Shown: one piece after another, positions 1,931-60,127 of the stretch | Layout of the letters: the number at the start of each line of letters is the position of its first letter | Numbering within the stretch: the first letter of the stretch is position 1 | NCBI GenBank assembly: GCA_028826165.1 | Contig: JAPDFW010000133.1 | Coordinates: 1-64,000, forward strand | Length of the DNA stretch: 64,000 nucleotides | Direction of reading: 5' to 3' | Origin: Anaeramoeba ignava BMAN | Taxonomy: Eukaryota > Protista > Anaeramoebae | Program-made: the position numbers and the translations under genes | The notes under the pieces: generated by a model | What the model was told of the DNA's origin: nothing | The model's input: only the letters and a program-made list of their open reading frames with translations | The model's database searches: none

Positions 1931-2616
1931 ATAAAACTGTAAACAAATTTGTTTTACAAACATAAAATAGATTTTGTTTATAAAATGTAAAAATAAAATT
2001 TGTAAATAAATAAAAAATAAATTCTTCATTTGTTATAAAACAGCGGTATCAATAACCACAAACAAGTGTATGACTTGGATTATCATTTTTTTAAAAGTTT
2101 TGTAAGATCTGCTTCAGTTTCTACAAGATAAAGTTGACTGAAGAAGGTTTAAAAGGTGAAGTTGTTCAAAAATACTTGTTTTATCTAAAATTCTAAAAAG
2201 CTGCAAAAAGGTGAATATTATGGTATAAATTTCATCATCAAAATTAATTGTGTGCGAAGGTTTTATAAATTTTAAAATTATTATTAAAAATTAAAAATAT
2301 TTTAATGAAATTGAAAATTCAAATTTCATTTTTATATTTTTATTTAAAAGAAAAGAAAAAGGAAAAATGATTTTTATTTTTATTTTTGTTCCAAATTCTT
2401 TTCAAAAAGTAAAATCAAAAATAATTGAAACTAAAATTAAAATAATAATAAAAATTGTGAACAAACAATTAAAACTTTTTCTGTTTTTCTTTTTAAATAA
2501 AATGGAAGATAAAAATGGAAACTAAATAATTTAAAAAGCCTATTTTCTTGAAAACTAAAAATTAAAAATTTAATAATTAATAAAAATTTAATAAAAATTA
2601 ATTAATTATATTTTAC

Positions 2617-8495: not shown

Positions 8496-8564
<69 letters not shown>

Positions 8565-18858: not shown

Positions 18859-19017
18859 ATTCAAAATAAAAAAAAGGAGAAAAAAAAAAAGGAGAATAAA
18901 AAAAAAAAAAGCAAAAAAAAGGAAAAATAAGAATTAAATAAAAAAAAAAAAGGAAAAATAAAAATAAAAATAAAAATATTTTTTTTTCATTTTTTTCATT
19001 TCATTTTTTTTCTTAAA

Positions 19018-24553: not shown

Positions 24554-24591
<38 letters not shown>

Positions 24592-25192
24592 AAGTAAAAG
24601 TAAAAGTAAAAGTAAAAGTAAAAGTAAAAGTAAAAGTAAAAGTAAAAGTAAAAGTAAAAGTAAAAGTAAAAGTAAAATCAAAAGTAAAATCAAAAGTAAA
24701 GGACACAAGAAATCGAGAAAGAACCAAAATGAAATTAAGATTAAACAATGGAAGAAAAAAGAAAAACAAAACAAACAATTTTTCCAAGAATTTGGATTTG
24801 ATTTAAAATGGATTGAAATCAAAAAAGGAAGAAAAGGAATATTAAAAGATTTTCATCAATTATATCAAAAAGAAGAATCAAAAAATTTTAAAATTATTTA
24901 TTCAGAAAAAGAAAATGAAAATCAAAATGAAAATGAAATTAAAATTCATAAATTAATTTTAATGTTAAGAAGTAGATTATTTAAAACAATGTTTCTGAGT
25001 ATTCAAGATCCAATTAATCAAGTTCAAGATTATTCAGGAAAATCATTTTCAACATTAAATCAATTAATATATTTCTTTTATCATGATGAATTTAATTATA
25101 ATATGAGAATGAATTTTAATTTTATTGAAGAATTTCAAGATTTAAAAGATTTTTATCAATTAAATCCAAATTCAAATCCAATTTTCAAATAA
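19018..25192 (+). CDS. Ankyrin-repeat (about 45 repeats) + tandem BTB/POZ protein; one-base frameshift near 23690
   Basis: 36-38 aa repeats NETPLHLIC...EIIKFLVSKGANVN; extra A in attatcaaaatttctt versus the repeat consensus attatcaaatttctt; BTB motifs FTDFEIEC...FKVHKLILLTR and IKIHKLILMLRSRLFKTMF. Confidence 0.9.
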
Positions 25193-26194: not shown

Positions 26195-27331
26195 TTAATA
26201 GCATTTCTCGTGAACAATTGAAGGACCTGTTTCATCATATTCTTCTTTTGAAATCAACATAGATTGGAAAGTAGAAAGAGTAGACAAAATAGATCCACCA
26301 ATCCAAGCATAATATTTTCTTTCAGGATCAGCAATAACTTTAAATCTTACAGAAGGGTATAAATGAATCAATTCTTTTTCTATTCTTTTTTCAATTCCAG
26401 GAAAAAATGAAGATCCTCCAGATAAAACAATATTTTCAGAATAACACTGACTGAAAGAATGATCAAATTTCAAGACTGAGTCATGAATTGTTTGAGGAAT
26501 ACCTGGATGTTCGAATCCAAGAAGAGAGGGATTGAATATTGGTTCTGGACATTTAAACCTTTCATCTTCAAGTGTGATCGAATTGGTATTATCAGGAAAA
26601 TAATATTCTTTTTTAATGGAAGAAGATCTATTTGAGGAATCGGATTCTTTTTCAAAATCCAAAGCAACATAACAAAGTTTTTCTTTGATATCTCTTGCAA
26701 TTTCTCTTTCTTCTGATGTTTTAAATGAATAACCCCTTTCATTCAATATTTTCATCATGTAATCAGTTAAATTTCTTCCAGAGACGGAAGATTGAATACT
26801 TGAATGAGACATAGCATAACCATCATAAACAGTAACAATATTAAACTCACTATCGCCTAAATCAACACTGATTCCTGTTGTTCTTCCTGAAGAATAAATT
26901 GACAGAACTGATGTGTTACTTAGATACATCGCTGGAACAGCAAATGTTTCAAACATGATTTCGGTTATTTTCTCTCTATTTGCTTTTGGATTCATTATTT
27001 TCTCAGTCAAAAATACTGCATGTTCTTCAGGTGCAATTCTTAATTCTTTATAAAAAATATAATTCCATATTTTCTCCATTTCATCCCAATTTGTTATTAT
27101 CCCATGTTCTATTGGATATTTTAATTGTAATATTTCCCTTTTGGTTTTTGCTTCTTCTCCTATATAATATTCTTTTTCTAATTTTTCTAATTTTTCTCCT
27201 GAATTTCTTGTTTTTCCTATTATTGTTGAGATTATTGATCTTGGTTTATCATCTCCTGAAAATCCTGCTTTAATTGTATCTGAACCATTATCAATTACTA
27301 TTGCTAGAATTTCATCATCATCATCAGACAT
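26195..27331 (-). CDS. Divergent actin-like protein (paralog 1)
   Basis: [61 protein letters not shown]; intronless, 378 aa. Confidence 0.92.
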   Translation of the reverse strand: MSDDDDEILAIVIDNGSDTIKAGFSGDDKPRSIISTIIGKTRNSGEKLEKLEKEYYIGEEAKTKREILQLKYPIEHGIITNWDEMEKIWNYIFYKELRIAPEEHAVFLTEKIMNPKANREKITEIMFETFAVPAMYLSNTSVLSIYSSGRTTGISVDLGDSEFNIVTVYDGYAMSHSSIQSSVSGRNLTDYMMKILNERGYSFKTSEEREIARDIKEKLCYVALDFEKESDSSNRSSSIKKEYYFPDNTNSITLEDERFKCPEPIFNPSLLGFEHPGIPQTIHDSVLKFDHSFSQCYSENIVLSGGSSFFPGIEKRIEKELIHLYPSVRFKVIADPERKYYAWIGGSILSTLSTFQSMLISKEEYDETGPSIVHEKCY

Positions 27332-27408
27332 TTTAAAAAATGAAAAAAATGAAAAGAAAAAAATGAAAAGAAAAATTAATTGAGAAAAATATAAAGAAAA
27401 AAAATATT

Positions 27409-27715
27409 AAAAAATTTTAAAATTATTTATTCAGAAAAAGAAAATGAAAATCAAAATGAAAATGAAATTAAAATTCATAAATTAATTTTAATGTTAAGAA
27501 GTAGATTATTTAAAACAATGTTTCTGAGTATTCAAGATCCAATTAATCAAGTTCAAGATTATTCAGGAAAATCATTTTCAACATTAAATCAATTAATATA
27601 TTTCTTTTATCATGATGAATTTAATTATAATATGAGAATGAATTTTAATTTTATTGAAGAATTTCAAGATTTAAAAGATTTTTATCAATTAAATCCAAAC
27701 CAAATTTTCAAATAA
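27409..27715 (+). pseudogene. Duplicated 3' end of the ANK-BTB gene (near-identical to 24880-25192)
   Basis: Nucleotide identity begins at aaaaaattttaaaattatttattcagaaaaag in both places; peptide MLRSRLFKTMF...QLNPN is identical. Confidence 0.85.
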
Positions 27716-28015
27716 AAAACAACAAATTAATCAAATTTTTGATTTTAATTTTTGGATTTTTTGATTTTTGATTTTCATTTTAATTTTGATTTTTGATTTT
27801 TAATTTTGATTTTTGATTTTTGATTTGGATTTTAATTTTGATTTTAATTTTAATTTTCATTTTTGATTTTTGATTTTTGATTTTGATTTTGATTTTGATT
27901 TTGATTTTGATTTTAATTTTGATTTTGATTTTAATTTTGATTTTGATTTTGATTTTGATTTTAATTTTAATTTTAATTTTCATTTTTGATTTGATTTTGG
28001 ATTTCAAAAAAAAAA

Positions 28016-29164
28016 TTAATAGCATTTCTTGTGAACAATTGAAGGACCTGTTTCGTCATATTCTTCTTTTGAAACCCACATAGATTGAAAATTAGAAAGA
28101 GCAGACAAAATAGATCCACCAATCCAAGCATAATATTTTCTTTCAGGATCAGCAATAACTTTAATTTTCATATCAAGAGGAGCTAATTGAGTCAATTCTT
28201 TTTCTATTCTTTTTTCAATTCCAGGAAAAAATGAAGATCCTCCAGATAAAACAATATTTCCATAAAAATCCTTTCTGATAGAATGATCGCATTTCATGAT
28301 TGAGTTATAAATTGTCTCAGGAATACCTGAATATTCCAATCCAAGAAGAGAGGGATTGAATATTGGTTCTGGACATTTAAACCTTTCATCTTCAAGTGTG
28401 ATAAAATGGATATTATCAGGAAAATAATATTCTTTTTCAATGGAAGAAGATCTATTTGAGGAATCGGATTCTTTCTCAAAATCCAAAGCAACATAACAAA
28501 GTTTTTCTTTGATATCTCTTGCAATTTCTCTTTCTTCTGATGTTTTAAATGAATAACCCCTTTCATTCAATATTTTCATCATGTAATCAGTTAAATTTCT
28601 TCCAGAGACAAAATAATGAAGAATAGAATGAGGCAAAGCATAACCTTCATAAACAGGAACAATATTAAACTCACTATCACCAAAATCAACACTGATTCCT
28701 GTTGTTCTTCCTGAAGAATAAATTGACAGAACTGATGTGTTACTTAGATACATTGCTGGAACAGAAAATGTTTCAAACATGATTTGGGTTATTTTCTCTC
28801 TATTTGCTTTTGGATTCATTATTTTCTCAGTCAAAAATACTGGATTTTCTTCAGGTGCAATTCTTAATTCTTTATAAAAAATATAATTCCATATTTTCTC
28901 CATATCATCCCAATTTGTTATTATCCCATGTTCTATTGGATATTTTAATTGTAATATTCCCCTTTTGGTTTTTGCTTCTTCTCCTATATAATATTCTTTT
29001 TCTAATTTTTCTAATTTTTCTAATTTTTCTCCTGAATTTCTTGTTTTTCCTATTATTGTTGAGATTATTGATCTTGGTTTATCATCTCCTGAAAATCCTG
29101 CTTTAATTGTATCTGAACCATTATCAATTACTATTGATCGAATTTCATCATAATCATTAGACAT
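28016..29164 (-). CDS. Divergent actin-like protein (paralog 2)
   Basis: ATG at 29164 ([18 protein letters not shown]...); full actin fold, closely similar to 26195-27331. Confidence 0.92.
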
Positions 29165-29250
29165 TTTAAAAAATGAAAAAAATGAAAAGAAAAAAATGAA
29201 AAAAAACAATTTTTTTTGAATTGGAATTGAAAAAAAAGAAAAAAAAGAAA

Positions 29251-31368
29251 TTAAAATAATGATAAAATTATCATTATTCCTAAAATTGAAAAATTGAAAA
29301 TAATTTCTTCACTTGAAGAAGGTGGATTTGGACTTGGACTTGGATTTGGACTTGGATTAAAAAATAAAAATTGATCAAAGCAAGATTGTAATGAATTATA
29401 ATATGCCAAATATCCATAATCTTTTGTTGGATCATAAGCATAAATTGAACTTCCAAATATCTCATCATCAACATTTGCTGTTGAAATTAATTGATTTGAA
29501 ATTGTATCAATTTGAAGAACTGATTCAAAATATTCATCTGAAGTAGAATTATAAAATTCTACTAAGAAATAAACCGAAGTATCATTAGAATTAATAAAAC
29601 TTTCAAAGAAATTGTTAAAATCTGATATATTTGATATATTTAAACAATCATTCATAACTTCCATATTAGTTAAATTTACTCTACAAATCAAATAATTATT
29701 ATAATCTCCAAAATAAATCAATTCATGACTTTTATCAAGAACTGGATAATAAACATTATATTCTGTTAAATTAGCTGTGGAAATTTGATTTAGATTTGGT
29801 AATTGATGTTTATAAATAAAATATTGTGAGCCAACTCCACTATCATTATATATCAAACAATAAAGATAATCATGAAAATAATCAAGATATAAACCTTTTA
29901 CAGTTACTTCATATGCTAATTGAAATGAATACAAAATTTGCAAATCAGGACTATTCATTTTGATTAAGTAAGCATAAAAATCGGTATTATTATAATATCC
30001 AACATAAAGAGTTTGATTTTGTTGATAAAAAAAAGTTGAACTAACTTGTACATTTGAATAAATTGTTACAGTTTCATCAATCGAGAAATTTGATAATCTA
30101 ATTTTCATAATTTTTAAATTATTATAACTCAGAAACAAATAAATGAATCCATTTATACTATCAATTTCTCCATAATAAAGAGTATCACTTAAACTAAGAA
30201 GTAAATAATCAACAAGTTCAAATGATTCAAGATCAACTTTGGCAATTATTCCACCAAAGTCACTAAAGTAAATATAACCAATTTGATTTAATTCATCAAT
30301 CAAAATAAAATCTGGATTTGTATAAGAAATAAAATTAGAACTGTTTCCTTGTGTAAGTGATGGTAAATTAATTTCAATAATTTGATAGTCATTTTTTGGG
30401 ATGTAAGCTTCTGAAACATCTGAATTAATTCCTATTGTGTTAGTATAATATCCACTCCAATTATATGAATCTTCTATTGTGAAAGTTGTTAAATTCACTT
30501 TAAAGAGATGATTATCAACAGTGGAAAAATAAGCAATTCCATTTAATAAATCAATTCCTGCTCCCATACAATTTTCTGGAGATGATGAACTAATTGAATC
30601 AACTGATGTGAAATCTGTTAAATTGATTTTAGCAATTCTCATTGAATTTTGAGCAGTTCCAAAATACATCATTTGAGTTGAATTATCAATCACTCCATAT
30701 TTTAATTTTGCAACACTTGTTAAATTTACTAAAAGATAATCAATTTGAGTAAAAGTTGATAATTCAATTTTGTAAATTGTTGCATTAGTTCCAGAACTTG
30801 TATCTGTTGAAACATATAATATTCCATTATCAACATCAATTATTGAGCCATAGAATTGATAATTTGAAAGTGTTAAATTTGATTCTTCATTCCATCCATT
30901 CAAATCAACTTTAACAATAATAATTGGATTTTCGAATTCAATATAAACTTTTTGATTGATTAAATCAATTTCAATCATATCAGCATAACTTGTATTTGAA
31001 ACACTTAATGTTAAGTTATCAATAATTTGGAATGTATTCAAATCAAATTTCAATAATATATTAGAACCATAAGGTGCAATATAAAGAAGTTTATTTTCAT
31101 TATCAATTGCTCCATATCTCCCATTTTCAAAATCAATTTTAGTATAATTCAACAAATCAAATGTGTACAAATCATATTTCCAAATATAATTAAACCCGTC
31201 ATCTCTTTCTTCAAGAAAATAAAGAAATCCATCATTTTCATCAATAAAAGTTTGATAAGGATTATTCATTATTGGAGAAAATTTGTATGAATTCAATAAA
31301 TTAACTTCAGATTGAACCAATAAAATGAAACAATTAAATGAAATGAAAAAAAGCAAAATTAAATTCAT
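29251..31368 (-). CDS. Secreted, probably GPI-anchored, repeat-rich (beta-propeller-like) surface protein, paralog 1
   Basis: Hydrophobic N-terminal signal; ~40-45 aa repeats (ID..N..LY......I.K.DL..F...D.L); many NxS/T sites; Pro/Ser spacer and hydrophobic C-terminus. Confidence 0.75.
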
Positions 31369-31890
31369 TTTAATTTGTTTTAATTTAATTTTTTTTTTGT
31401 TCTTATTCTTATTCTTATTTGATTATTCTGGATTTAAATAAATAAAAATAAAAAGAAATTAAAAATTAAAAAGAAATTAGATTAAAATTAAATTAAATTA
31501 AACTAACCTTTGTTTTTTGTTTTTGTTTTTGAAAGAAAAATGAATAAGATAAAAAAAATAAAAAAAAAAATAAAAATAAAAAAAAAAAAAATAAAAATAA
31601 ATAAATAAAGGGATTAAATTATCTTTAAAATAAATAATCAAAAATTTAAAATTTTTAATTAAAAATTGTTACAAAAATAAATAAAAATAAAAATAAAAAG
31701 ATTTTTTCAACTCATCTTGTTATTTATTTTAAAAAACAAACAAAAAAAAATAAAAATTTTTTCTTATTTTTTCTTTTATTTCAATTTGTTATTATTATTA
31801 TTATTATTTTGATCTTTCTTATCAAATTGAAATTAAAAAAAGAAAAGAAATTGAAAAGAATTGGAATTGAAAAAAAAGAAAAAAAAGAAA

Positions 31891-33999
31891 TTAAAATAAT
31901 GATAAAATTATCATTATTCCTAAAATTGAAAAATTGAAAATAATTTCTTCACTTGAAGAAGGTGGATTTGGAGGTAAAGTTGAATTTGGTAAGGAGATTT
32001 GATAAAAGTAAGATTGCAATTCATTATAATAATATACCAAATATCCATAATTTTTTGTTGGATCATAAGCATAAATTGAATCTTCAAATATCTCATCATC
32101 AACATTTGTTGTTGAAATTAATTGATTTGAAATTGTATCAATTTGAAGAACTGATTTAAAATATTCATCTGAAGTAGAATTATAAAATTTTACTAAGAAA
32201 TAAACCCAATTATCATTAGAATTAATAAAACTTTCAAGGAAATCGTCAACATCTGATATATCTGATATATTTAAACAATCATTCATAACTTCCATATTAG
32301 TTAAATCAACTCTACAAATCAAATAATTATCATAATCTCCAAAATAAATCAATTCATGAGTTTTATCAAGAACTGGATAATAAACATTATATTCTGTTAA
32401 ATTAGCTGTGGAAATTTGATTTAGATTTGGTAATTGATGTTTAGAAATAAAATATTCTGTTCCAACTCCACTATCATTATATATCAAACAATAAAGATAA
32501 TTATGGAAAGAATCAAGATATAAACCATATATAATTACTTCATATGCTAATTGAAATGAATTCAAAATTTGCAAATCAGGACTATTCATTTTGAATAAGT
32601 AAGCATAATCATCAGTATTGTTATAACATCCAACATAAAGAATTTGATTTTGTTGATCAAAAACAGTTGAGAAGGTGTGTACATTTGAATAAATTGATAC
32701 AGTTTCATCAATCGAGAAATTTGATAATCTAATTTTCATAATTTTTACATCATTATAAGTCAGAAACAAATAAATGAATCCATTTATACTATCAATTTCT
32801 CCATAATAAAGAGTATCACTTAAACTAAGAAGTAAATAATCAACAAGTTCAAATGATTCAAGATCAACTTTGGCAATTATTCCATTCAAATCATAAAAGT
32901 AAATATAACCAATTCGATTTAGTTCATCAGTCAAAATCATTCTTGGATCTGTATAAGAAATAAAATTAGAACTGTTTCCTTCTGTAAGTGATGGTAAATT
33001 AATTTCAGTAATTTGATATTTATTTTGTGGAATGTAAGCTTTTGAAACATCTGAATTAATTCCTATTGTTTTAGTATAATATCCACTCCAATTATATGAA
33101 TCTTCTATTGTGAAAGTTGTTAAATTCACTTTAAAAAGATAATTATTCGCAGAGGAAAAATAAGCAATTCCATTTAATGAATCAATTCCTGCTCCCATAC
33201 AGTATTGTGAAGATGATGCATTAATTGAATCAACTGATGTGAAATCTGTTAAATTGATTTTAACAATTCTCATTGGATTTTGATAAGTTCCAAAATACAT
33301 CATTTGAGTTGAATTATCAATCACTCCATATTGTAATTTTCCAACACTTGTTAAATTTACTAAAAGATAATCAATTTGAGTAAAAGTTGATAATTCAATT
33401 TTGTAAATTGTTGCATTAGTTCCAGAACTTGTATCTGTTGAAACATATAATATTCCATTATCAACATCAATCACTGAACCGATAAATTGATAATTTGAAA
33501 GTGTTAAATTTGATTCTTCATTCCATCCATTTAAATCAACTTTAACAATAATAATTGGATTTCCGAATTCAATATAAACTTTTTGATTGATTAAATCAAT
33601 TTCAATCATATCAGCATAACTTGTATTTGAAACACTTAATGTTAAGTTATCAATAATTTGGAATGTATTCAAATCAAATTTCAATAATATATTAGAACCA
33701 TAAGGTGCAATATAAAGAAGTTTATTTTCATTATCAATTGCTCCATATTTCCCATTTTCAACTTCAGTTTTAGTATAATCCAACAAATCAAATGTGTACA
33801 AATCATATTTCAAAAGATAATTGGATCCGCCACCTCTTATATCAAGAAAATAAAGAAATCCATCATTTTCATCAATAAAAGTTTGATAAGGATTATTCAT
33901 TATTGGAGGAAATTTGTATGAATCCAATAAATTAACTTCAGATTGAACCAATAAAATGAAACAATTAAATAAAATGAAAAAAAGGAAAATTAAATTCAT
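31891..33999 (-). CDS. Secreted/GPI beta-propeller-like surface protein, paralog 2
   Basis: Same architecture as 29251-31368; identical C-terminal [24 protein letters not shown]. Confidence 0.75.
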   Translation of the reverse strand: MNLIFLFFILFNCFILLVQSEVNLLDSYKFPPIMNNPYQTFIDENDGFLYFLDIRGGGSNYLLKYDLYTFDLLDYTKTEVENGKYGAIDNENKLLYIAPYGSNILLKFDLNTFQIIDNLTLSVSNTSYADMIEIDLINQKVYIEFGNPIIIVKVDLNGWNEESNLTLSNYQFIGSVIDVDNGILYVSTDTSSGTNATIYKIELSTFTQIDYLLVNLTSVGKLQYGVIDNSTQMMYFGTYQNPMRIVKINLTDFTSVDSINASSSQYCMGAGIDSLNGIAYFSSANNYLFKVNLTTFTIEDSYNWSGYYTKTIGINSDVSKAYIPQNKYQITEINLPSLTEGNSSNFISYTDPRMILTDELNRIGYIYFYDLNGIIAKVDLESFELVDYLLLSLSDTLYYGEIDSINGFIYLFLTYNDVKIMKIRLSNFSIDETVSIYSNVHTFSTVFDQQNQILYVGCYNNTDDYAYLFKMNSPDLQILNSFQLAYEVIIYGLYLDSFHNYLYCLIYNDSGVGTEYFISKHQLPNLNQISTANLTEYNVYYPVLDKTHELIYFGDYDNYLICRVDLTNMEVMNDCLNISDISDVDDFLESFINSNDNWVYFLVKFYNSTSDEYFKSVLQIDTISNQLISTTNVDDEIFEDSIYAYDPTKNYGYLVYYYNELQSYFYQISLPNSTLPPNPPSSSEEIIFNFSILGIMIILSLF

Positions 34000-34358
34000 T
34001 TTAATTTGTTTTAATTTTTTTGTGTTTAATTGTTCTGGATTTAAATAAAATGAAATAAATCAAAATTAAAATTAGATTAACAAGAAATTAAAAAGAAATT
34101 AAACTCACGAACCTTTTTTCTTTTTTTTGGAAAGTAAAAAAATGAATAAAATAAAAAGATCAATTTTGCTATCTCTTATTATTTCTTTTAATAAATAAAT
34201 AATTTTAAAAAAAGCAAAAATTAAAATTTTTTGTTTTCTTATTTTTCTTTTATTTCAATTTGTTATTATTATTATTTTGATCTTTCTTATCAAATTGAAA
34301 TTAAAAAAAGAAAAGAAATTGAAAAGAATTAGAATTGAAAAAAAAGAAAAAAAAGAAA

Positions 34359-36460
34359 TTAAAATAATGATAAAATTATCATTATTCCTAAAATTGAAAA
34401 ATTGAAAATAATTTCTTCACTTGAAGAAGGTGGATTTGGATTTGAACTAAAAAATGAAAATTGATCAAAGTAAGATTGCAATTCATTATAATAATATGCC
34501 AAATATCCATAATCTTTTGTTGGATCATAAGCATAAATTGAACTTCCAAATATCTCATCATCAACATTTGTTGTTGAAATTAATTTATTTGAAATTGTTT
34601 CAATTTGAAGAACTGATTCAAAATATTCATCTGAAGTAGAATTATAAAATTTTACTAAGAAATAAACCGAAGTATCATTAGAATTAATAAAACTTTCAAG
34701 GAAATTGTTAACATCTGATATATCTGATATATTTAAACAATCATTCATAACTTCCATATTAGTTAAATTTACTCTACAAATCGAATAATTATAATCATCT
34801 CCAAAATAAATCAATTCATGAGTTTTATCAAGAACTGGTTGATAAACATTATATTCTGTTAAATTAGCTGTTGAAATTTGATTTAGATTTGATACTTGAT
34901 GTTTAGAAATAAAATACAGTGATCCAACTCCAGTTTCATTCTGTATCCAACAATAAAGATAATTATGAAAATAATCAAGATATAAACCTTTTACACTTAC
35001 TTCATATGCGAATTGAGATGAATTCAAAATTTGCAAATCAGGACTATTCATTTTGATTAAGTAAGCATAAAAATCGGTATTGTTATAATATCCAACATAA
35101 AGAGTTTGATTTTGTTGATCAAAAAAAGTTGAGCTAATTTGTACATTTGAATAAATTGTTACAGTTTCATCAATCGAGAAATTTGATAATCTAATTTTCA
35201 TAATTTTTAACTCAGATGAAGTCAGAAACAAATAAATGAATCCATTTATACTATCAATTTCTCCATTAACAACAGAATCACTTAAATTAAGAAGTAAATA
35301 ATCAACAAGTTCAAATGATTCAAGATCAACTTTGGCAATTATTCCATTCGAATTGCTAAAGTAAATATAGGCAATTTGAATTAATTCATCAATCAAAATC
35401 AATTTTGGTTTTGTATAAGAAATAAAATCAGAACTCTTTCCTTCTGTAAATGATGGCAAATTCATTTCAGTAATTTGATAATAATTTTTTGGAATGTAAG
35501 CTTCTGAAGCATCTGAATTAATTCCTATTGTATTAGTATAATATCCACTCCAATTATATGAATCTTCTATTGTGAAAGTTGTTAAATTTACTTTGACAAG
35601 ATAATTATTTGTAGATGAAAAATAAGCAATTCCATTTAATGAATCAATTCCTGCTCCCACACAATTTTGTGAAGATGATGTGCTAATTGAATCAACTGAT
35701 GTGAAATCTGTTAAATTGATTTTAACAATTTTCATTGAATATTGAGAAGTTCCAAAATACATCATTTGAGCTAAATTATCAATCACTCCATATTTTAATG
35801 CCATAACACTTGTTAAATTTACTAAAAGAGAATCAATTTGAGTAAAAGTTGATAATTCAATTTTGTAAATTGTTGTATTAGTTCCAGAACTTGAATCTGT
35901 TGAAACATATAATATTCCATTATCAACATCAATCACTGAACCAGTAGGTTGATCATTTGAAAGTGATAAATTTGATTCTTCATTCCATTCATTCAAATCA
36001 ACTTTAATAATAATAATTGGACTTCCGAATTCAATATAAACTTTTTGATTGATTAAATCAATTTCAATATCTTTAGCATAACTTGTATCTGAAACACTTA
36101 ATGTTAAGTTATCAATAATTTGGAATGTATTCAAATCAAATTTCAATAATATATTAGAAATATAAGGTGCAATATAAAGAAGTTTATTTTCATTATCAAT
36201 TGCTCCATTTTTGAATTTTTAAATGCATTTTTAGCGCAATTCAACAAATCAAATGTGTACAAATCATATTTCAAAAGATAATTGGATCCATCATTTCTTT
36301 GATCAAGAAAATAAAGAAATCCATCATTTTCATCAATAAAAGTTTGATAAGGATTATTCATTATTGGAGGAAATCTGTATGAATCCAATAAATTAACTTC
36401 AGATTGAACCAACAAAATGAAACAATTAAATGAAATGAAAAAAAGGAAAATTAAATTCAT
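34359..36460 (-). CDS. Secreted/GPI beta-propeller-like surface protein, paralog 3 (1-nt frameshift near 36215)
   Basis: ORFs 36143-36460 and 34359-36146 join into a full-length paralog; the segment is 1 nt shorter than in paralog 2. Confidence 0.7.
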
Positions 36461-36694
36461 TCTAATTTGTTTTAATTTAATTTTTTTTGTGTTTAATTGA
36501 AGGGATTTAAATAAAATGAAATGAAATGAAATGAAAATTAACAGAAAATTAAAAGAAAATTAACAGAAATAACTCACGAATTTTTGTTTTTATTTTTGAT
36601 GGAAGAAAAATGAAAAAGAAAAAAAAATTTTTTTTTTCAAATAAAAATAAAAATTAAAATAAAAAAAGAAAATCCACAAAAATTTTTAATTTAA

Positions 36695-49499: not shown

Positions 49500-50325
49500 A
49501 ATTTACTAATTTATTTTTTATTTTTAAAATTTTTATATATTTTAATTTTTAATATATTTTATTAAATATTTTTAATTAAATTTTTATTTATATTTTTAAT
49601 AATAATTTATTATAATTTATTTATAATTTATTTTTAAATATAATTTTATATAATTTTATTAATAAATATTAATTTAAAATTATTAATATTATTAATATAT
49701 TTTTATTAAATATTTTTAATTAATTTTTTATTTATATTTTTAATAATAATTTATTATAATTTATTTATAATTTATTTTTAAATTCTAATTTTAAAGTAAT
49801 TTTATTAATAAATATTAATTTAAAAATTATTTAATATTTTAATATATTTTTATTAAATATTTTTAATTAATTTTTATTTATATTTTTAATAATAATTTAA
49901 TAATAATTTATTTATAATTTATTTTTAAATATAATTTTAAGTAATTTTATTAATAAATATTAATTTAAATTATTATTAATATTTTTAATATATTTTTATT
50001 AAATATTTTTAATTAATTTTTATTTATATTTTTAATAATTTAATATAATTTATTTATAATTTATTTTTAAAAATAATTTTTAAATAATTTTTTTATTAAT
50101 AAATTTAATAATTTATTATTATTATTTTTAATATATTTTTATTAAATATTTTTAATTAATTTTTTATTTATATTTTTAATAATAATTTATTATAATTTAT
50201 TTATAATTTATTTTTAAATATAATTTTAAATAATTTTATTAATAAATAATAATTTAAAATTATTAATATTTTTAATATATTTTTATTAAATATTTTTAAT
50301 TAATTTTTTATTTATATTTTTAAAT
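49500..50325. repeat. ~145-bp A/T tandem array (about 6 units)
   Basis: Anchor attaaatatttttaattaa at 49561, 49705, 49852, 49998, 50141, 50285. Confidence 0.85.
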
Positions 50326-53300
50326 TTTGATAAAAAATAATTTAAAATCAATGTGCTCTTTTTTTTCAGCAAGTGGGATTTTTCTCTTCACTCCTCGCTT
50401 ATTCCATTTTTTGCACTAAGCTACTTATTCACAAAATCGGAAATTTTCTCTATTTTAAAATCAAATTAAATTTTAATTGGAAAAAAAATTTTTTTTTTCT
50501 TTTGTTTTAAATTTTTCATAAATTTTCCCTATTTCATTTTTCTTTTTACTTTTTACTTTTGAATTTTTAAATCGTTTTAATTATCAAAATTCAATTTATT
50601 TAAAGTTTAAGATGAATTTACAAAAAATTTTAGCAGAAATGTTCAAGAAGATCGATAAAATAGATGAAGAAAATGATAGAAAACATGGATACAAATCAAA
50701 AAAAGTTGAGAAAATTATCTTTTCTAAGAAAAGTCCTTTAAAAGTCCTTTGGAATTGGGCTCTGATGAAAGTAGATGAAAAATGTTTACAAAAAATTACT
50801 AGTTTCTCCATGAAAGAATTTATTTCAATTTATAATATAGTAAAACCATATTTGTTCACTTTCTATCAGAAATCACAAGAGAAAGAAATTTCAAAAAAAA
50901 ATGTTCTCTTAATCATTCTTGTTTACCTTCGGAAGTATTACATCTTTGAAGATCTTGAAAAATTTTTTGGAATTAGTCAATCTTCTATTCATAAAATAAT
51001 TAGTCAAAATATTAAAAGAATTATGAACCCTTTAAAAGAATGGCAAATCTATTGGATTTCCAAAAGTGATCAAGAGAAAGCCAACATCAGATTCCTTCAT
51101 TATCCTGACGCTATATGTGTAATTGATGCAACTGTGCAAAAGTGTCTTAAACCAATTGATTCAAATATTCAAGGTTTGTTCTATTCGGGTAAGCACAAGT
51201 ATCATTGTTTAAAATCTTTAACTATTCATGCTCCTGATGGAATTCTCATGGACTTCATAACTGGAATCCCAGGTTCTCATCATGACAAGAAACTGTGGGA
51301 TTCGACAAATTGGTGGAATAAATGCCGAAGACCCAAAAAGAAGACAAAACAAAATAAGAATAAGAAAAAAAAGAAAAAAAAGAAAAAAAAGAAGAAAAAG
51401 AAGAAAACTACTAAACAATTACAAAAAGAACAAGAAAGGGATGCTCAAAAAAATTTGAAAAAAGAATATTATGGAGTTTTGGCGGATCTGGGTTTCCAGG
51501 GAATCCAGAAAGTATGTTACGCAATTTTGCCTCATAAAAAAAAAAAGGGTCAACTTTCCAAGAAAAAAATGGAATTCAATCACAAATTGGGAAGTAACAG
51601 GATAATTGTGGAGAATTTTTACGGAAAGTTAAAGCATTTTAAAATTTTGAAACATATATACAGAGGTGAATTAACAGATTATTCAAATATTTTTGTTGTT
51701 TGTGCAGCACTTACCAATTTCAAATTAAGGAATTCACCATTAAGAAAAAAAAAGGAAAGCAAAATAGTAAATTCAAAAGAACTCAAAGATCAAAAGATTT
51801 CTTCAAATGATTGCAATTATGATCCTATTGAAAATTCAAATGAAAATGAAAATCAACAAATTTTATCAAAAAGCTTAACTGCTCCAAGACAAAAAAGAAA
51901 GGATTTTCAAAATTTAGATTTATGTTTTTCTCAGCCTCAATCCAAATTGAAAACTTCTCAATTAACTACTACCAATCAAAAAAACGAATTAGTTATCAAA
52001 CCAAGAATTGATCTTATTTTTTTTCATCCTCAATTTTCTCAAAATCCAAATCCTGGAGTTTCCAAATTACTTTTGAAAGGAATTCCAAATTCAGGAAACT
52101 CTTGTTTTATGGCAGCAACACTGCAAGTTTTGATTCGATTAAATTTAGAATTTATTTTTAAGTATGGAAATTTGACTGGAAATGTAGTTGAATTAGTCAA
52201 GAATTTATCAAATGAAAAAAAAAAAGTGAATTTATATAGAATTCAACAAACGATGAATAAAAAATTATCAAAATTTGGATCAATATTAGAAGAAGAAGAT
52301 GCTAATGAGTTTTATGAATTTGTTTTGGATTTTCTTCGAGAAGAATCACTAGCGATGAGGAAATGGTTATTTTTTGACGCTGATAAAGAGAAAATATCAG
52401 AAAATATTTCAAGAATTAGAGCTTTTTATGGAATTTTAGTTAAAAAAATGGTCTGTGTCGACTGTGCTAATGTTCATGAAATTCCTCAAGAATTTTGTTC
52501 TTTTCCTGTATCTTTCGTTAGATCGAAACCAAAAAACAAAAAAAATGATAATGATAATGAAAATGATAATGAAAATGATAATGAAAATGATAATGAAAAT
52601 GATAATGAAAATGATAATGAAAATGATAATGAAAATGATAATGAAAATGATAATGAAAATGATAATGAAAATGATAATGAAAATGAAAATGATAATGAAA
52701 ATGATAATGAAAATGATAATGAAAATGATAATGAAAATGAAAATGAAAATGATAATGAAAATGAAAATGAAAATGAAAATGAAAATGAAAATGATAATGA
52801 AAATGATAATGAAAATGATAATGAAAAAATGAAAATGATAATGAAAATGAAAATGATAATGAAAATGAAAATGAAAATGATAATGAAAATGAAAATGAAA
52901 ATGAATATCAAAGTGAATATCAAAGTGAATATCAAAGTGAATATCAAACTCAAACTCAAACTGATAATGAAACTCAAAATGAATATCAAAGTGAATATCA
53001 AACTCAAACTCAAAGTGAATATCAAAGTGAATATCAAACTCAAACTCAAACTGATAATGAAACTCAAAATGAATATCAAAGTGAATATCAAACTCAAATC
53101 AAACTCAAATTCAAACTGATAATGAAACTCAAAATGAATATCAAAGTGAATATCAAACTCAAATTCAAACTGATAATGAAACTCAAAGTGATAATGAAAA
53201 TGAAATGCCAAGATATGAATTAAAATTTATGATTGAAAATGAATTTAGTGAAGAAAATATTTCAAAAAAAGATATTGATTACAAATGTGAGACATGCGAG

Positions 53301-54244
53301 ATATTAAAACAATATAATCTAAGGCAAAATGAAAAACACAACAAGAATCCAGATTCCATTTTACAAAAATATGAAGTCAGAAGTTTTCCACATTTTTTTT
53401 GTTTTCAAATTAAAAGATTTGTTTATGATTTTAGAAAAAAGCAAACAATCAAAATTGAAGATCCAGTTCAAATTCCACAAGAACTTGATCTATCTTCTTT
53501 TAAAACATTAGATTGCAAGGAGAATCATTTCAAATATCGATTAAGAGCTTTCATATACCATTTAGAAAAAGAAGATTACAAGCATTATATCAGTTTTATT
53601 TTTTCTGAAAAAAATAATTATTGGATAAAATGCAATGACTCACAAGTAACTACAGAAAAAAACCCAAAAGAATTAAAGTATGGATATCTTTATTTTTATG
53701 AAAAACAAATTGGAAATGAAAAAAAAATATCTTCATCTTCAAATTCAAATTTAAAAGAAAAAGAAAACAAACTTTCACAAAAGAAGGGAAAAAAAACAAA
53801 TCAGCAATCTCAAATTGAGCAAGATATTGAGGAGAAAAATCCAAAATCTGAAATTGGGAAGAGGGAAGAAAAAAGTGGAACAAAGAAGCCTAAACAAAAA
53901 TTAACAAATTTCCAAACTTTAAATTCCTCAAATTTACAAGATTTTTTCAACCTCTTACAAAAGTAAAAAGAATTAAAAAGAAATCTTTCATTTTTTTTCA
54001 AGAATTAAGAAATCAAATTCCATCAATAAAAACAGTTTTTAATTCCAATTTATTTTGTTTATTTTTGTTTTAATTAAAGAAATTCTAAAAGTTATTTTTT
54101 TCTTTTTTTTGAGAATTCTGAGTTGTGAATAGAAAAAGCGTTTGTGAATAGGATTGGAAAATAGAGAAAATTTAGGTAAAAGGAAATAAAAGAAAAATGA
54201 ATGGGAATTTTTTTTGTGAATGTCTTACTTGTTGTGAATATATC
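50323..54244 (+). mobile_element. PHIS-type DNA transposon family B (termini not resolved)
   Basis: DDE_Tnp_4 transposase; inverted subterminal motifs (AAATTTTCTCTATTTT at 50441-50456 vs its complement at 54158-54173; TATTCACAA vs TTGTGAATA); the same 145-bp array on both sides. Confidence 0.6.
50612..53966 (+). CDS. DDE_Tnp_4 transposase fused to a USP/UCH (C19) deubiquitinase; frameshifts inside the N/D/E repeat tract
   Basis: HTH LLIILVYLRKYYIFEDLEKFFGISQSSIHKII; VIDAT, FYSGKHKYHCLK, GSHHD, LADLGFQG, RIIVENFYGKLKHFKIL; in the same ORF USP Cys box KGIPNSGNSCFMAATLQVL, EEDANEF, CVDC; ORF 53205-53966 supplies CETC, FPHFFCFQIKRF and His box YRLRAFIYH...KHYISF...WIKCNDSQV. Confidence 0.88.
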
Positions 54245-54595
54245 TATTATAATTTATTTATAATTTGTTTTTAAAAGTAATTTTAAATAATTTTATTAAT
54301 AAATATTAATTTAATATTATTAATAATATTAATGTATTTTTATTAAATATTTTTAATTAATTTTTTATTTATATTTTTAATAATAATTTATTATAATTTA
54401 TTTTTAAAAGTAATTTTAAATAATTTTATTAATAAATATTAATTTAAAATTATTAAAATTATTTTAATTTTATTAAATATTTTTAATTAATTTTTTATTT
54501 ATATTTTTAATAATAATTTATTATAATTTATTTATAATTTGTTTTTAAAAGTAATTTTAGATAATTTTATTAATAAATAATAATTTAAAATTATT
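54245..54595. repeat. Continuation (about 2.5 units) of the 145-bp A/T array, same orientation
   Basis: Anchor at 54342 and 54472. Confidence 0.8.
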
Positions 54596-56148
54596 TCCAA
54601 ATTTTTTAAAATTTCATTTTTCTAGATTTTTTTTTATTTATTCAAAATGGAAATTTTTTGGGATTTAGAAACTTGTGATCTATTTCCTAACGTAAAAATA
54701 GTAGATTTAATTAATTCTATTTACATCTTCGCATTAGAATATGGGAATGTGAATAAGATACATGCATATTTTAATCAAAAAGAATTTTTCAAAAATCCAA
54801 TTTTTGAATTTCAAAAAATTCGAGATGATTTTTCAAAAATTGGAATTGAAATATCTCTCATTTTAGAAGAATTCTTTGCAAATATTTGTGAATTAGTATT
54901 AAATCATGAATTTGATAAAGCGTATTTATCTGATCAAATTCAATTAAAAATTATTTTAATTACTGGAAATCAAATAATTTTATTTAAATTACTTGAATTT
55001 CTCGAAAAACAAAATGTTTCGGTTATTTTAATTTGTCCTTTGAATAATGATTGGTTTCAAAAAAATTACAAAAAAATTTTGGGATTTAGATGTGTTCATG
55101 AATGTTTTAATTGGCCTCCTATTGAATTTCCACTTTTTATTCAACCAAAAAAATATTTTGATGAAATCCACTTCAAAATTGAAAATCTAAATGAAAATCA
55201 AAACCAAAATCTAAATCAAAATCAAAATCAAAATCTAAATCAAAATCTAAATCAAAATCTAAATGAAAATCAAAATCAAAACCAAAATCAAAATAAAAAT
55301 CAAAATCAAAATCAAAATCAAAATCAAAACCAAAATCAAAATCAAAATCAAAATGAAAATCAAAATAAAAATAAAAATAAAAATCAAAATCAAAATCAAA
55401 ATCAAAACCAAAATCAAAATCAAAATCAAAGAAAGAATTTAAATCAAAACCAAAATATAAATCAAAATCAAAACCAAAATATAAATCAAAATCAAAATCA
55501 AAATCAAAATCAAAATCAAATTGAAACTCAAAATCTAAATCTAAATCAAAATCAAAATCAAAATCAAAATCTAAATCTAAATCTAAATCAAAATCAAAAT
55601 CAAAATGAAAATCAAAATCAAAATCAAAATCAAAATCAAAATCAAAATCAAAATCAAAATCAAAATCAAAATCAAAATCAAAATCAAAATCAAAATCAAA
55701 ATCAAAATCAAAATCAAAATCAAAATCAAAATCAAAATCAAAATCAAAATATAAATCTAATTCAAAATCAAAATCAAAATCAAAATCAAAATCAAAATCA
55801 AAATCAAAATCAAAATCAAAATATAAATCAAAATCAAAATCAAAATGAAAATCAAACTGAAATTAAAATTGAAAATGAAAATAATATTCCATTTCAATTC
55901 TATAACTTATTTCAAAAATCTAGAGAAAAGGAGTATTCATTTCAATTTTCCAAATCAAATACAGAAAACGAAAAAACTCCAAAAATTCCTTATCAATTCA
56001 AAAAATTGATGAAAATTCTATTAGCATTTCAAACAGATAAAATCACGTTCAATGATTTAAAAAAAGTATTTTCCATTTATTATCCTTTTTTATCAATTGA
56101 ACTAAATAGATTTCTTCTTCTTGCTGAGGAACAAGGACTTGTTATACT

Positions 56149-56280
56149 GGGCCTGTCCCAGGCCCATTTGCCAGAAAAAAAAAATAAAAAAAAATAATTA
56201 AACAATTTTTTAATTAATTTTTTTTAATTAATTTTTTTTTAATTAATTTTTTTTTAATTAATTTTTTTTTAATTAATTTT

Positions 56281-56329
<49 letters not shown>

Positions 56330-59300
56330 TCATTTCCAGAAAGTGGAATTTCTCTTTATTCCTTTTTTCAACAAATTTTCAAGTTGTCGAATTGAGATAA
56401 AATCTCTTTTTTTTTGACTCAAAGAAAATAATTTGAGAATTAAATATCTGAAACGATAAACAATATCCATTTCCAAGCAATTAGCCAGAAGATAAGGATT
56501 TAATCTCAGTTGAGAACAACCCCAACACATTAAAAGAACAAAAATCCCACAAGAATTTCCATCTCTCTGATTCCAATGATGCCAAATTTGTTTAATCACA
56601 AAATCCATATTTAAGTAATTTTTGATGAACTTTTGGAGATTTTTTGCAATTTGATAGGGAATTCGTGAAAAAAGCGTTGATTTACTGTTGAATATTAACA
56701 ATTCTCTTTGATTAAAATGTAGAAAAATCACCACATAATGCATATCATAATAGAAAATAAGAGGAATATATTGTTGTTCACTCACAGAGCATTTCAAGAA
56801 GAAATCTATCATCTTTTGGAATTCTCTATGACATTTCATCATATGATATGGAAACATGCTTTGATTTATCATAGCTTGTGCATATTGTTTCAAAATTGTC
56901 TTCTCTCTCGTGTGAAAATTTATCAAGAAATTTATCCAACATTCTTCAATAGGAATTTGTGGGATTTGCTTAAAATAGTCCAGAAACTTCCATAAAATGA
57001 CAGAAGAAAATAGATTTTGAGACCAAATCACAAAAAGCAAAACCCATAGTTGCGATCCCATGGTGAATTTATTATCAATTTCTTCTAAATTTGGAGGCAT
57101 ACCTTCTAAACATTCTATTAAGGGATTAAATTGAAGTTCAAAAAATTCAGGACCTTGATATAATTTTTCAGACAGAAAGAATTCCAGAGAATTCATTATA
57201 TCTGAAAAATCTAATAAGCCATGAAGGTCTATTCTGTACTCCCAATCTTCATTAATCCCAAGTTTTTCAAAATTTACAACTGGTGTTACTAAAGTCAACC
57301 CTCTGATCTCATTGAGCAAATTAGCTTTAGTAGGATCCTCTCGAGCTGAACCTTTACCGAAATTTCTCAATTCTCGAAAACCAAATTTGGGATAAGTTTT
57401 TTCAATTCTTTTGGATTCACTTACATTAGTGACTTCCCATTTTTGAGAGTAATCAAAGTTCGATTCTTTCTTCTCAATACTTGAAACCTCTTCTATTTCC
57501 ATAAATTTTCCTACAAAATCTTTTTTGGCAATCTCTGTGTTCTTTTCTTCCTCATTGATTCGATCATCCATCTCAAAAATGATTTTCTTTTCAATTTTCT
57601 CTTTTCTTTTCCCCACTTTTCTCCTCTTTAAACAGGAAATAAATCCATTATCAATTTTTATCATTGTTGTATTCTCATTATTTTGGTTTCTCTTTTGATT
57701 TCTCTTTTGATTTCTCTTTTGATTTCTCTTTTGATTTCTCTTTTGATTTCTATTTTGATTTCTCTTTTTATTTTCATTTTCATTTTCACTTTCACTTTCA
57801 TTTTGATTTTGATTTTGAATTTGATTTTGATTTTGATTTTGATTTTGATTTTGATTTTGATTTTCATTTTGATTTTCATTTTGATTTTCATTTTGATTTT
57901 GATTTTGATATTCATTTTCATTTTCATTTTGATATTCACTTTGATATTCATTTTGATATTCATTTTCAGTTTCATATTCACTTTGATATTCATTTTCATT
58001 TTCATTTTCATTTTCATATTCACTTTGATATTCATTTTCATTTTCATTTTCATTTTCATATTCACTTTGATATTCATTTTCATTTTCATTTTCAGTTTCA
58101 TATTCACTTTGATATTCATTTTCATTTTCACTTTGATATTCATTTTCATTTTCACTTTGATTTTCACTTTGATATTCATTTTCACTTTGATATTCATTTT
58201 CATTTTCACTTTGATATTCACTTTGATATTCATTTTGATATTCATATTCATTTTCATATTCACTTTGATATTCATTTTCATTTTCATTTTCATTTTCATT
58301 TTCATTTTCATTTTCACTTTGATTTTCATTTTGATTTTCATTTTCATTTTCATTTTCATTTTGATTTTCACTTTGATTTCTCTTTTTATTTCTCTTTTGA
58401 TTTCTATTTTGATTTCTCTTTTTATTTTCATTTTCATTTTCACTTTCACTTTCATTTTCATTTTGATTTTGATTTCTCTTTTGGTTTCTCCTTTGATTTC
58501 TCTTTTGATTTCTCTTTTGATTTCTCTTTTGATTTCTATTTTTCTCTTTTTCTTCTTTTTCCTTCTGTTTTCTGATTCTTTCCTCTTTTTTCCGCTTGTT
58601 AATTATTCTTCTCTTCTCTTGCTTAATTTCCACATTTTTCCATTCTTTTTCATCTCTAAATGTTTTTCGTAAAGATCCATTTCCTAATTTAAAATTATAT
58701 AAAAGTGCACACACTTCGATTACTTGAATATGAAATTGTTTCTTGAGTTGAACCTTTTTCCTTCAAAATTTTCCATTTTTCAAGATCGAGAAAACATTTT
58801 CGATAATACATCGATAGCGGTTTATATGAAAATTATATTTTTTATGGTTATTCTTTTTGTTTCTATACTCTCTTTTGGGTGTAATACAATATATAGCTGG
58901 AAATGCTTTATCTCCAAGAATTTTATGGGATTTCAATAGTTCAAGAAGTCCAGATTTTGTTGTTGCCTTGGAATCATGCATGCTCCCTTGGAATCCAGTT
59001 TTGAAAAATATGATTTTCCCCTTACTATTGCACACAACAATAGATTTGAGAGAAGAATGTCCTCTTTTGACAGAATGATATTTTTTTTCTTTCAAAAGAT
59101 TCCGAAATCTGGGATGATCTGTCCCATCGATTACCCCAACACAGTTGGGGATTTTTCTTGATTGCCATTTTCGAATTTCTCTTATCCTCTCTTCTCTTGT
59201 TAACCAGTGAATTTGGTTGTTGAGAATTTCTCTTAATAAAGGAATAATTTTTTTTAAATATCTTTCGACTGTACTCTTTCCAATTTTCCACATGGCTCCT

Positions 59301-60127
59301 AAGATGCGATAAGTGAGAGAATGCCTTAACCATGTTAATGTGAGTAATAATTTATTTGGAAGATCAAGGGAAGGAATTTGAGATGGAGAAGAAAGAAGAT
59401 TTTGGGAAGAAGTAGGATGCTCTTGTTGATAAATTTCAATTTTGGAAAGAATTTCTTCAAATTGTGAAAAAAAGACAATCCAGTCATATCGGGAGATAAG
59501 ATATGAGAATTTCTTATTTCTGAATATAGATCCCTTTTCTCTGAAGAACGAAAATCCAAATTTGGTATAACATTCTGAGAGAATTTATCATTTTGATTCA
59601 ATTCTTGTAAAAGAGTTGCGTTTTTGTTTTAGAAAGAAAGAAGAAGAGCAAAGATTTAATAAATTTTGGATAACCTATATTTGGTGCCCCAAGTTTATCA
59701 AGAATTTCTTTTCGTTTGTCGATAAATTCTTATTTGAGGATGTTTTTCATTCGTTTTTGATTTCGTGTTGATTTCATATGAAAAAGCAAAAAAAAAATTT
59801 GTTGTTTGTAAAAGAAGAAAAATGAAAGAAAAATAAAAGAAAAATAAAAGAAAAATTAAAATAGAATAAATAAAGACAATTCTTTTTAGTTGGAAGATTT
59901 CAAGAAAAATTCTAAAAAACAAAAATAAAGTGAAGTTATGAGATCCTTTTGAATAGAAATGTTTTATAAAATTTAAAAAAGATTTTTTATTTATTTTTTT
60001 TTCTTGATTTTTTTCGAAATTTCTTTTTCGTTTCCTTCTCAAGACAATAATGTTAATTTTTGAATTTCATGTTGGATTGAAAGTTTATTTGATGATTAAA
60101 TTTTTTTGTCGACACCGGGACGAGCCC
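56149..60127 (-). mobile_element. PHIS DNA transposon family A, copy 2 (3979 bp), TSD ACT
   Basis: GGGCCTGTCCCAGGCCC begins at 56149; CCGGGACGAGCCC at 60115-60127; ACT at 56146-56148 and 60128-60130; near-identical to 4600-8682. Confidence 0.95.
56330..59601 (-). CDS. Transposase-Ulp1(C48)-like fusion, copy 2 (frameshifts near 59460, 59170 and 58760)
   Basis: [14 protein letters not shown]...GSMHDS...LGDKAF...IENVFSIL in ORF 58763-59293; ORF 56330-58714 runs uninterrupted from the transposase tail (CALLYNF) through the linker into the C48-like domain. Confidence 0.85.

Follow-up and report, generated by a model that had tools for sequence, protein, structure and literature searches.

A transposase joined to a ubiquitin-specific protease in a Pangu-like transposon lineage of Anaeramoeba ignava

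We analyzed a stretch of 64,000 nucleotides from the genome of Anaeramoeba ignava BMAN (positions 1 to 64,000 of contig JAPDFW010000133.1, here C134; hereafter, the window), which comes from an assembly of 42.8 Mb in 147 contigs with 20% G+C (published A+T content of this genome, 80.65%; 10.1101/2023.03.03.530753). The window holds a transposon that encodes a transposase together with a ubiquitin-specific protease (USP) (Table 1). A first reading frame carries, with no stop between them, a helix-turn-helix (HTH) DNA-binding domain, a DDE catalytic core, a linker of about 120 amino acids (aa) and boxes 1 to 3 of the USP—the Cys box, which reads GIPNSGNSC and includes Cys498 and the oxyanion Asn, the EEDANEF box, and the first CxxC motif (CVDC)—and the remaining boxes, recognizable by the second CxxC (CETC), KRF, KHY, and CND, follow downstream of a coding microsatellite. 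Both halves had been pointed out in a preliminary description made from the sequence alone; the fusion proposed there stands for the in-frame HTH, DDE, and USP boxes 1 to 3, but the interval given for it (50612-53966) is not one open frame. Together with a sister element elsewhere in the genome, the locus shows that a Pangu-like lineage of PHIS (Harbinger/IS5-related) transposons in A. ignava encodes, as one polypeptide, an HTH and DDE transposase, a linker, and a USP.

The catalytic residues of the transposase are well kept: among the 76 relatives compared, D292 and E334 are invariant and D172 is conserved in at least 90%. AlphaFold2 models the DDE core of the window protein with a confidence (pLDDT) of 90.5; in structure comparison, the best matches in the PDB were weak and fell on the ISCth4, piggyBac, and Tn5 transposases, and a PDB sequence search with the window transposase gave no match. 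The long poly-Lys tract reported earlier within the DDE region is also present, in the loop between the first two catalytic Asp residues, which measures 68 aa in the window copy compared to 22 to 46 aa in 75 relatives. This Lys-rich insertion exceeds that of the sister family (family B) by about 33 aa, leaves a gap in the alignment to the family B protein P0001, and is modelled as two lower-confidence helices outside a DDE core that remains intact. The tract could plausibly act as a nuclear localization signal.

The DDE_Tnp_4/IS5-like core, with its D, D, and E, is that of a PHIS transposase. Within PHIS, the Pangu group has been described as having a DDE_Tnp_4-type transposase, 3-bp ANT target duplications, and short terminal inverted repeats (TIRs) starting with AG or GG (Han et al. 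2015, PMC4482050), and the window element and its kin, taken together, show these traits. The TIRs start with AGA in the window right TIR and in family B, and with GGG in families C and E; the duplications are AAT for the family B element on contig C91 and AAT, AGT, and ATT in families C and E, and the window element is followed by ATT at its right end, with no left flank to compare. Pangu elements, however, usually have two open reading frames (ORFs) and a transposase free of other domains (PMC4482050), whereas the window lineage has a single ORF with an HTH and a C-terminal protease. Because the ends fit but the one-ORF layout does not, we call the lineage Pangu-like rather than Pangu, a likeness judged from ends and described traits; our trees comprised unlabelled matches. 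Two other placements were rejected: ISL2EU elements are expected to have an AT duplication, a THAP domain, and a second ORF with YqaJ, but the kin of the window element have 3-bp duplications, and neither a THAP match in Pfam nor a second ORF was found; PIF/Harbinger elements are expected to have a TWA duplication and a Myb/SANT second ORF, but the kin have ANT duplications, and no second ORF lies between the ends.

A search for further genomic copies, proposed in the preliminary description, returned decayed relatives of about 70% identity and the diverged sister family B, of which there are three copies. The copy on C91 is intact, with a transposase-USP of 1014 aa (DDE_Tnp_4 and UCH domains) enclosed by a pair of 16-bp TIRs and a 3-bp AAT/AAT target duplication; NCBI annotates its protein only as a ubiquitin hydrolase. 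The copy on C67 (98%) has two homopolymer breaks and lacks the outer right TIR, and the one on C21 is an 83% copy. The family B USP has the full Cys/His/Asp triad with a canonical GHY, and in P0001 all six USP boxes lie in one polypeptide, which is not the case for the window copy as assembled. Structure modelling, suggested earlier as a check on the USP fold, was applied to this sister protein: the P0001 USP model has a core pLDDT mostly between 80 and 95 and matches USP2 and USP46 (Foldseek E 1e-16 to 1e-18; template-modelling score by target, 0.73 to 0.76), so that P0001 is predicted to adopt the thumb-palm-fingers fold of USPs. The transposases of the window family (family A) and family B are sisters, with 44% identity and approximate likelihood ratio (SH-aLRT) supports of 98 and 96, values that come from quick trees of the DDE regions only with the poly-Lys loop left out. 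The two proteins stay colinear up to and including the USP N-half, a part in which they match each other best. As the transposases are sisters and the proteins colinear into the USP, the fusion is older than the split between families A and B and has been retained while their transposases drifted apart to the present 44% identity. For the sister family, a transcriptome-derived A. ignava protein from EukProt (P0002) keeps one frame across the junction, beginning at the end of the DDE domain and including the Cys box.

The two halves of the window USP are each recognizable. Of the USPs tested, the N-half matches its family B counterpart best (33% identity), and it can be aligned with the D1D2 constructs of USP15/USP4 as far as the insertion point; the C-half aligns with the family B C-half and matches USP9X, USP5, and USP7 chains at E ∼1e-7. 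Between them, the microsatellite extends over about 660 bp (52545-53205) and lies between USP boxes 3 and 4, as the preliminary description had placed it (boxes as defined in PMC12906285). Cellular USPs of the USP4/USP15 type are similarly split between the two CxxC motifs, but the window insert is a low-complexity microsatellite and the window His loop has no glycines. The family B USP has low-complexity inserts of its own at other positions, and such inserts therefore recur in this lineage.

In the assembly, the first frame keeps to the N/D/E register as far as 52824-52829, where it slips out of it, and ends in a stop at 53117-53119; a second frame spans 52825-53223, and the His and Asp boxes lie in a third (53085-53966). 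Since the C-half is in another frame, the protein as assembled has the Cys without the His or Asp. An intron does not rescue the frame: only three GT-AG pairs fit, each of them would cut into box 3, and the GTAAG donor of other introns here is absent from all three. We think it likely that both frame changes are errors of the long-read consensus, made in a microsatellite beyond the reach of short-read polishing, because both lie at homopolymers, where most differences between near-identical repeat copies are found here: near-identical copies of family C differ by 19 small indels, nearly all in homopolymers, compared to 7 substitutions, and breaks of this kind are also seen among the family B copies. 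In the window element, both breaks lie within the repeat, and 2.7 kb of unique coding DNA is free of them. The real window gene would thus likely encode a protein of about 1117 aa, in which a long acidic loop stands between boxes 3 and 4.

The preliminary description had the USP Cys, His, and Asp all present, with KHY for the usual GHY. All are indeed encoded, but the His and Asp are in another frame and the His box deviates further than was stated: its loop reads HLEKEDYKHY, the glycine of HxG is absent as well, and the window USP has EED where QQD is usual. Among the aligned USP rows, the Cys, Asp, Arg, His, and Asp are conserved in at least 90%. The decayed relatives have LEKE.YK in common with the window copy, which marks the glycine-free loop as a real family trait and not an error. 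In typical USPs, the glycines of this loop line the channel for the ubiquitin tail. From these sequences, deubiquitinase (DUB) activity appears more likely for family B, with its canonical GHY, than for family A, with KHY and no loop glycines.

At its left side, the element is directly abutted by an AT minisatellite, and no AGA-type left TIR was found within the window. The decayed relatives align to about position 50320 and then continue upstream for about 40 bp into a TIR-like AGATATTCAAGAG, although this alignment is AT-rich and weak; the outermost ∼40 bp of the window copy, with its left TIR, have probably been lost. Because of this lost left end, the window copy is probably no longer mobile. 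The probable right TIR matches the sister family TIR at 10 of its 14 bases, and similarity to the relatives extends to this point. Three of these relatives (on C79, C42, and C108), which have many stops but both domains, sit within larger 96% duplications and hence represent one old insertion. A codon-position comparison with the window copy was uninformative for the USP because their decay is neutral and AT-biased, and as most of the box 3/4 region is lost in them, they cannot date the repeat.

We favor, with moderate confidence, the interpretation that these elements form a cut-and-paste transposon lineage with a fused transposase-USP, in which the window gene is probably whole, the window copy probably immobile, and the USP acts in cis. 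The transposase would carry the USP to the transposon ends and target chromatin, where, acting in cis, it would strip degradative ubiquitin from the transposase itself, which would thereby escape the proteasome, and ubiquitin marks from histones or repair factors close to the donor and target sites; this would favor excision, insertion, and gap repair. The transposon-borne USP claimed earlier is well supported at the family level by the intact sister on C91; that it is functional in the window copy can be proposed only tentatively, given the two frame changes, apparently missing left TIR, and glycine-free His loop. Several points weigh against our interpretation. The window element is single-copy, with no near-identical copy and only ∼70% decayed relatives, and appears in none of the RNA runs checked. 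Its His loop is without the glycines that line the ubiquitin-tail channel of typical USPs. P0002 ends early, in a tail absent from the two genomic copies read. Most close transposase relatives are without a USP, so the USP is an accessory that transposition does not need.

The same facts can be read differently. If the frame changes are real, the window copy would be a young pseudogene whose microsatellite expanded and slipped, encoding at most a transposase and a dead half-USP, while the fusion at the family level would stand. The two indels look real in the assembly, microsatellites slip readily, and a single copy with an apparently lost left TIR, seen in no RNA run, would suit such a gene; however, 2.7 kb of unique coding DNA has no stop or indel, all catalytic residues are kept, and the same type of indel dominates between near-identical repeat copies, so that we find the pseudogene possible but doubtful. 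Another view accepts the family A USP as whole and questions its activity: it could be a pseudo-DUB that serves as a tether to ubiquitin or ubiquitinated chromatin, or a retargeted enzyme that cleaves another modifier such as SUMO or NEDD8. The unusual His loop and EED for QQD would fit this, as would the absence of GHY in metagenomic transposon USPs, one of which weakly matches the SUMO-specific Peptidase_C98 (E 0.003), and the presence of CE-clan proteases instead in other PHIS families here. We nevertheless judge it improbable, as none of the Cys, His, Asn/Asp, oxyanion Asn, or two CxxC motifs has been lost and CYLD, in which a residue other than Gly precedes the His, is an active enzyme.

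Two further explanations were weighed. A domesticated, immobile host gene, in which the transposase targets the DUB to DNA, would account for a single copy with one end missing and both catalytic sets intact, but its right TIR and ANT flank are still crisp, the minisatellite site resembles those of other young insertions, and no A. flamelloides transposase-USP was among the best 150 matches; we regard domestication as very unlikely. As for chance, whether through a transposase landing in frame with a host USP gene or through an assembly joining two genes, dozens of host USP genes exist in this genome (140 matches), and the metagenomic protein P0017, with its ankyrin-USP-DDE order, may be such a case. 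Family B contradicts this for the window lineage, as this diverged sister, present in three copies, has the same domain order between its TIRs; moreover, the decayed relatives carry both domains and the short-read runs contain 93% of the words of the stretch, leaving chance juxtaposition with next to no credibility.

Beyond A. ignava, we searched 1.84 billion proteins and considered the best 150 matches, most of which were plain transposases. Fusions of DDE and UCH were seen in P0076, in P0109, and in P0186, a member of the cluster around match P0129; P0017 (L052, P0017/P0170) has the UCH before the DDE, in the order ankyrin-like, USP, DDE. All four come from short metagenomic contigs (L051-L054) on which no TIRs were found; one lies beside an A32-type ATPase gene, and the ankyrin-like and A32-ATPase neighbors suggest parabasalids as their source. 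The DDE-USPs among them (P0076, P0109, and P0186) branch apart from the Anaeramoeba pair in quick trees of the DDE regions, but the approximately unbiased test did not reject a single origin (p 0.059). Word-indexed protein searches returned A. ignava records only, and an Atlas feature search and a JGI metagenome scan gave no match. The architecture itself has already been noted: Trichomonas vaginalis XP_001314237.1 combines transposase_11 (PF01609) with Peptidase C19 (Bao, Kapitonov and Jurka 2010, PMC2836005, citing Gladyshev and Arkhipova 2009) and thus, as in the window lineage, joins an IS5/Harbinger-like DDE transposase to a C19 protease in one protein of another metamonad. That paper devotes two sentences to it and gives neither the ends of the element nor an analysis of catalysis, and we compare it by description only. 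Transposon-borne deconjugases of other kinds (OTU, Ulp1, VTD, UCH) are known as well. Ginger1 and Mutator transposases carry C-terminal OTU or Ulp1 domains (PMC2836005) and so also pair a cut-and-paste transposase with a ubiquitin- or SUMO-deconjugating cysteine protease of the same proposed role, although they belong to other transposase superfamilies and use other protease classes (OTU, C48); a repair link was proposed by Bao et al. (PMC2836005). Helitron-like elements, which encode rolling-circle RepHel proteins and not DDE transposases, resemble the window lineage in encoding a deubiquitinase: they carry VTD, OTU, or UCH domains, with PF00443 (UCH) in HLE2 (PMC9741609, PMC11417382), and their VTD domains are biochemically proven DUBs with a proposed anti-degradation role (PMC9741609). 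In the literature searched, a DDE transposase-USP fusion was mentioned only in passing, and no assay of the activity of a transposon-borne USP was found.

More interesting than the window fusion is the convergence within the A. ignava genome. In three other PHIS families (two window copies, C126, C74, and C98/C35), the C-terminal part is a CE-clan protease that has His, Asn, and Gln-Cys motifs and, in one case, scores above the Ulp1 cut-off; both window copies of family C have several homopolymer frame breaks, and the C35/C98 family has ATT duplications. In an element that we take to be Sola2-like, from its GAGTGATT ends, ATAT duplication, and family traits rather than a profile match, a transposase unrelated to PHIS is joined to a USP of its own across two in-frame GT-AG introns; a second subfamily is present on C48, C96, and C90. 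Among copies, this USP shows 23 synonymous compared to 10 nonsynonymous differences (counts that are not independent), an apparent sign of purifying selection. We tentatively suggest that ubiquitin- and SUMO-dependent destruction or silencing may be the main restraint on transposons in Anaeramoeba and that unrelated lineages—PHIS with a USP, PHIS with a CE-clan protease, and Sola2-like with a USP—may each have captured an active deconjugase as a fused counter-defense. If so, the intact family B protein makes this directly testable. Ideas on why ubiquitin or SUMO proteases are fused to transposases go back to 2010 or earlier and have stayed at the level of suggestion. Family B supplies a compact, recently copied element that has no introns and whose DUB a single Cys change would inactivate; the window copy, broken in the assembly and probably immobile, is a poorer study object than the C91 element. 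The genome also supplies natural comparisons in the C42/C108 family without a protease, the families with a CE-clan protease, and the unrelated Sola2-like element with its own USP. The protease-free PHIS transposase on C42 (L035:5984-7024) and C108 (L038) is found in the transcriptome (P0013). On C61 (L034:6983-9945), a tyrosine-recombinase-like ORF adjoins a truncated transposase of this group, and the NCBI model P0004 fuses both.

Table 1. Positions of the features of the window element and of related or comparable elements in the A. ignava genome
Feature	Location	Positions	Strand	Details
5' non-coding part of element	Window	50320..50611	+	Subterminal TATTCACAA motif at 50426
First reading frame	Window	50612..53119	+	Transposase, linker, USP N-half, then out-of-register repeat to stop; 835 aa as assembled
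HTH_Tnp_4 DNA-binding domain	Window	50891..51004	+	aa 94-131; PF13613, E 5.1e-8
DDE_Tnp_4 catalytic core	Window	51122..51718	+	aa 171-369, with D172, D292, E334; PF13359, E 3.5e-27
Lys-rich insertion	Window	51332..51466	+	aa 241-285
USP N-half, boxes 1-3	Window	52064..52520	+	Oxyanion Asn, Cys498 at 52103, EEDANEF, CVDC; PF00443, E 9.8e-12 for the piece alone
Coding microsatellite	Window	52545..53205	+	N/D/E hexamers, then EYQS/QT units; between the two CxxC motifs
Frame change 1	Window	52824..52829	+	Six-A run in a unit with four A at 36 other places
Frame change 2	Window	53095..53100	+	Five-base unit among six-base units
USP C-half, boxes 4-6, and C-terminal tail	Window	53205..53966	+	Third frame; CETC, KRF, His at 53583 in KHY, Asn-Asp (CND) at 53634-53639; PF00443, E 1e-20
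Probable right TIR and target site	Window	54232..54248	+	TIR 54232-54245, AGATATATTCACAA on minus strand, then ATT (ANT type)
Family B element, intact	L031 (C91)	2909-6595		Transposase-USP, TIRs, AAT duplication
Family C element, Pangu-like	Window	4600-8682	+	GGG-ended TIRs, AAT and AGT duplications in the family; transposase, N/E/Q repeat, CE-clan (Ulp1-like) protease
Family C element, Pangu-like	Window	56149-60127	-	As above
Family C element, Pangu-like	L041 (C126)			As above
PHIS transposase-CE protease, intact frame	L040 (C74)	3997-6492		832 codons stop to stop
PHIS transposase-CE protease, intact frame	L043 (C35)	4241-6793		851 codons stop to stop; same family on L042 (C98)
Sola2-like element	L048 (C1)	2065-5846		GAGTGATT ends, ATAT duplication; transposase joined to compact intact USP; copies on C59, C128, C24, C80, C105

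Elsewhere in the window, we noted a long gene of ankyrin-type repeats whose frame changes near 23690 (18931-25189, plus strand), two actin-like paralogs (26198-29308, minus strand), and three tandem paralogs of a protein of about 720 aa, the third with a frame change (29254-36559, minus strand). To the right of the element, an ORF at 54626-56194 (plus strand) matches the NYN domain weakly (E 0.006), contains a long N/Q repeat, and ends at the family C insertion.

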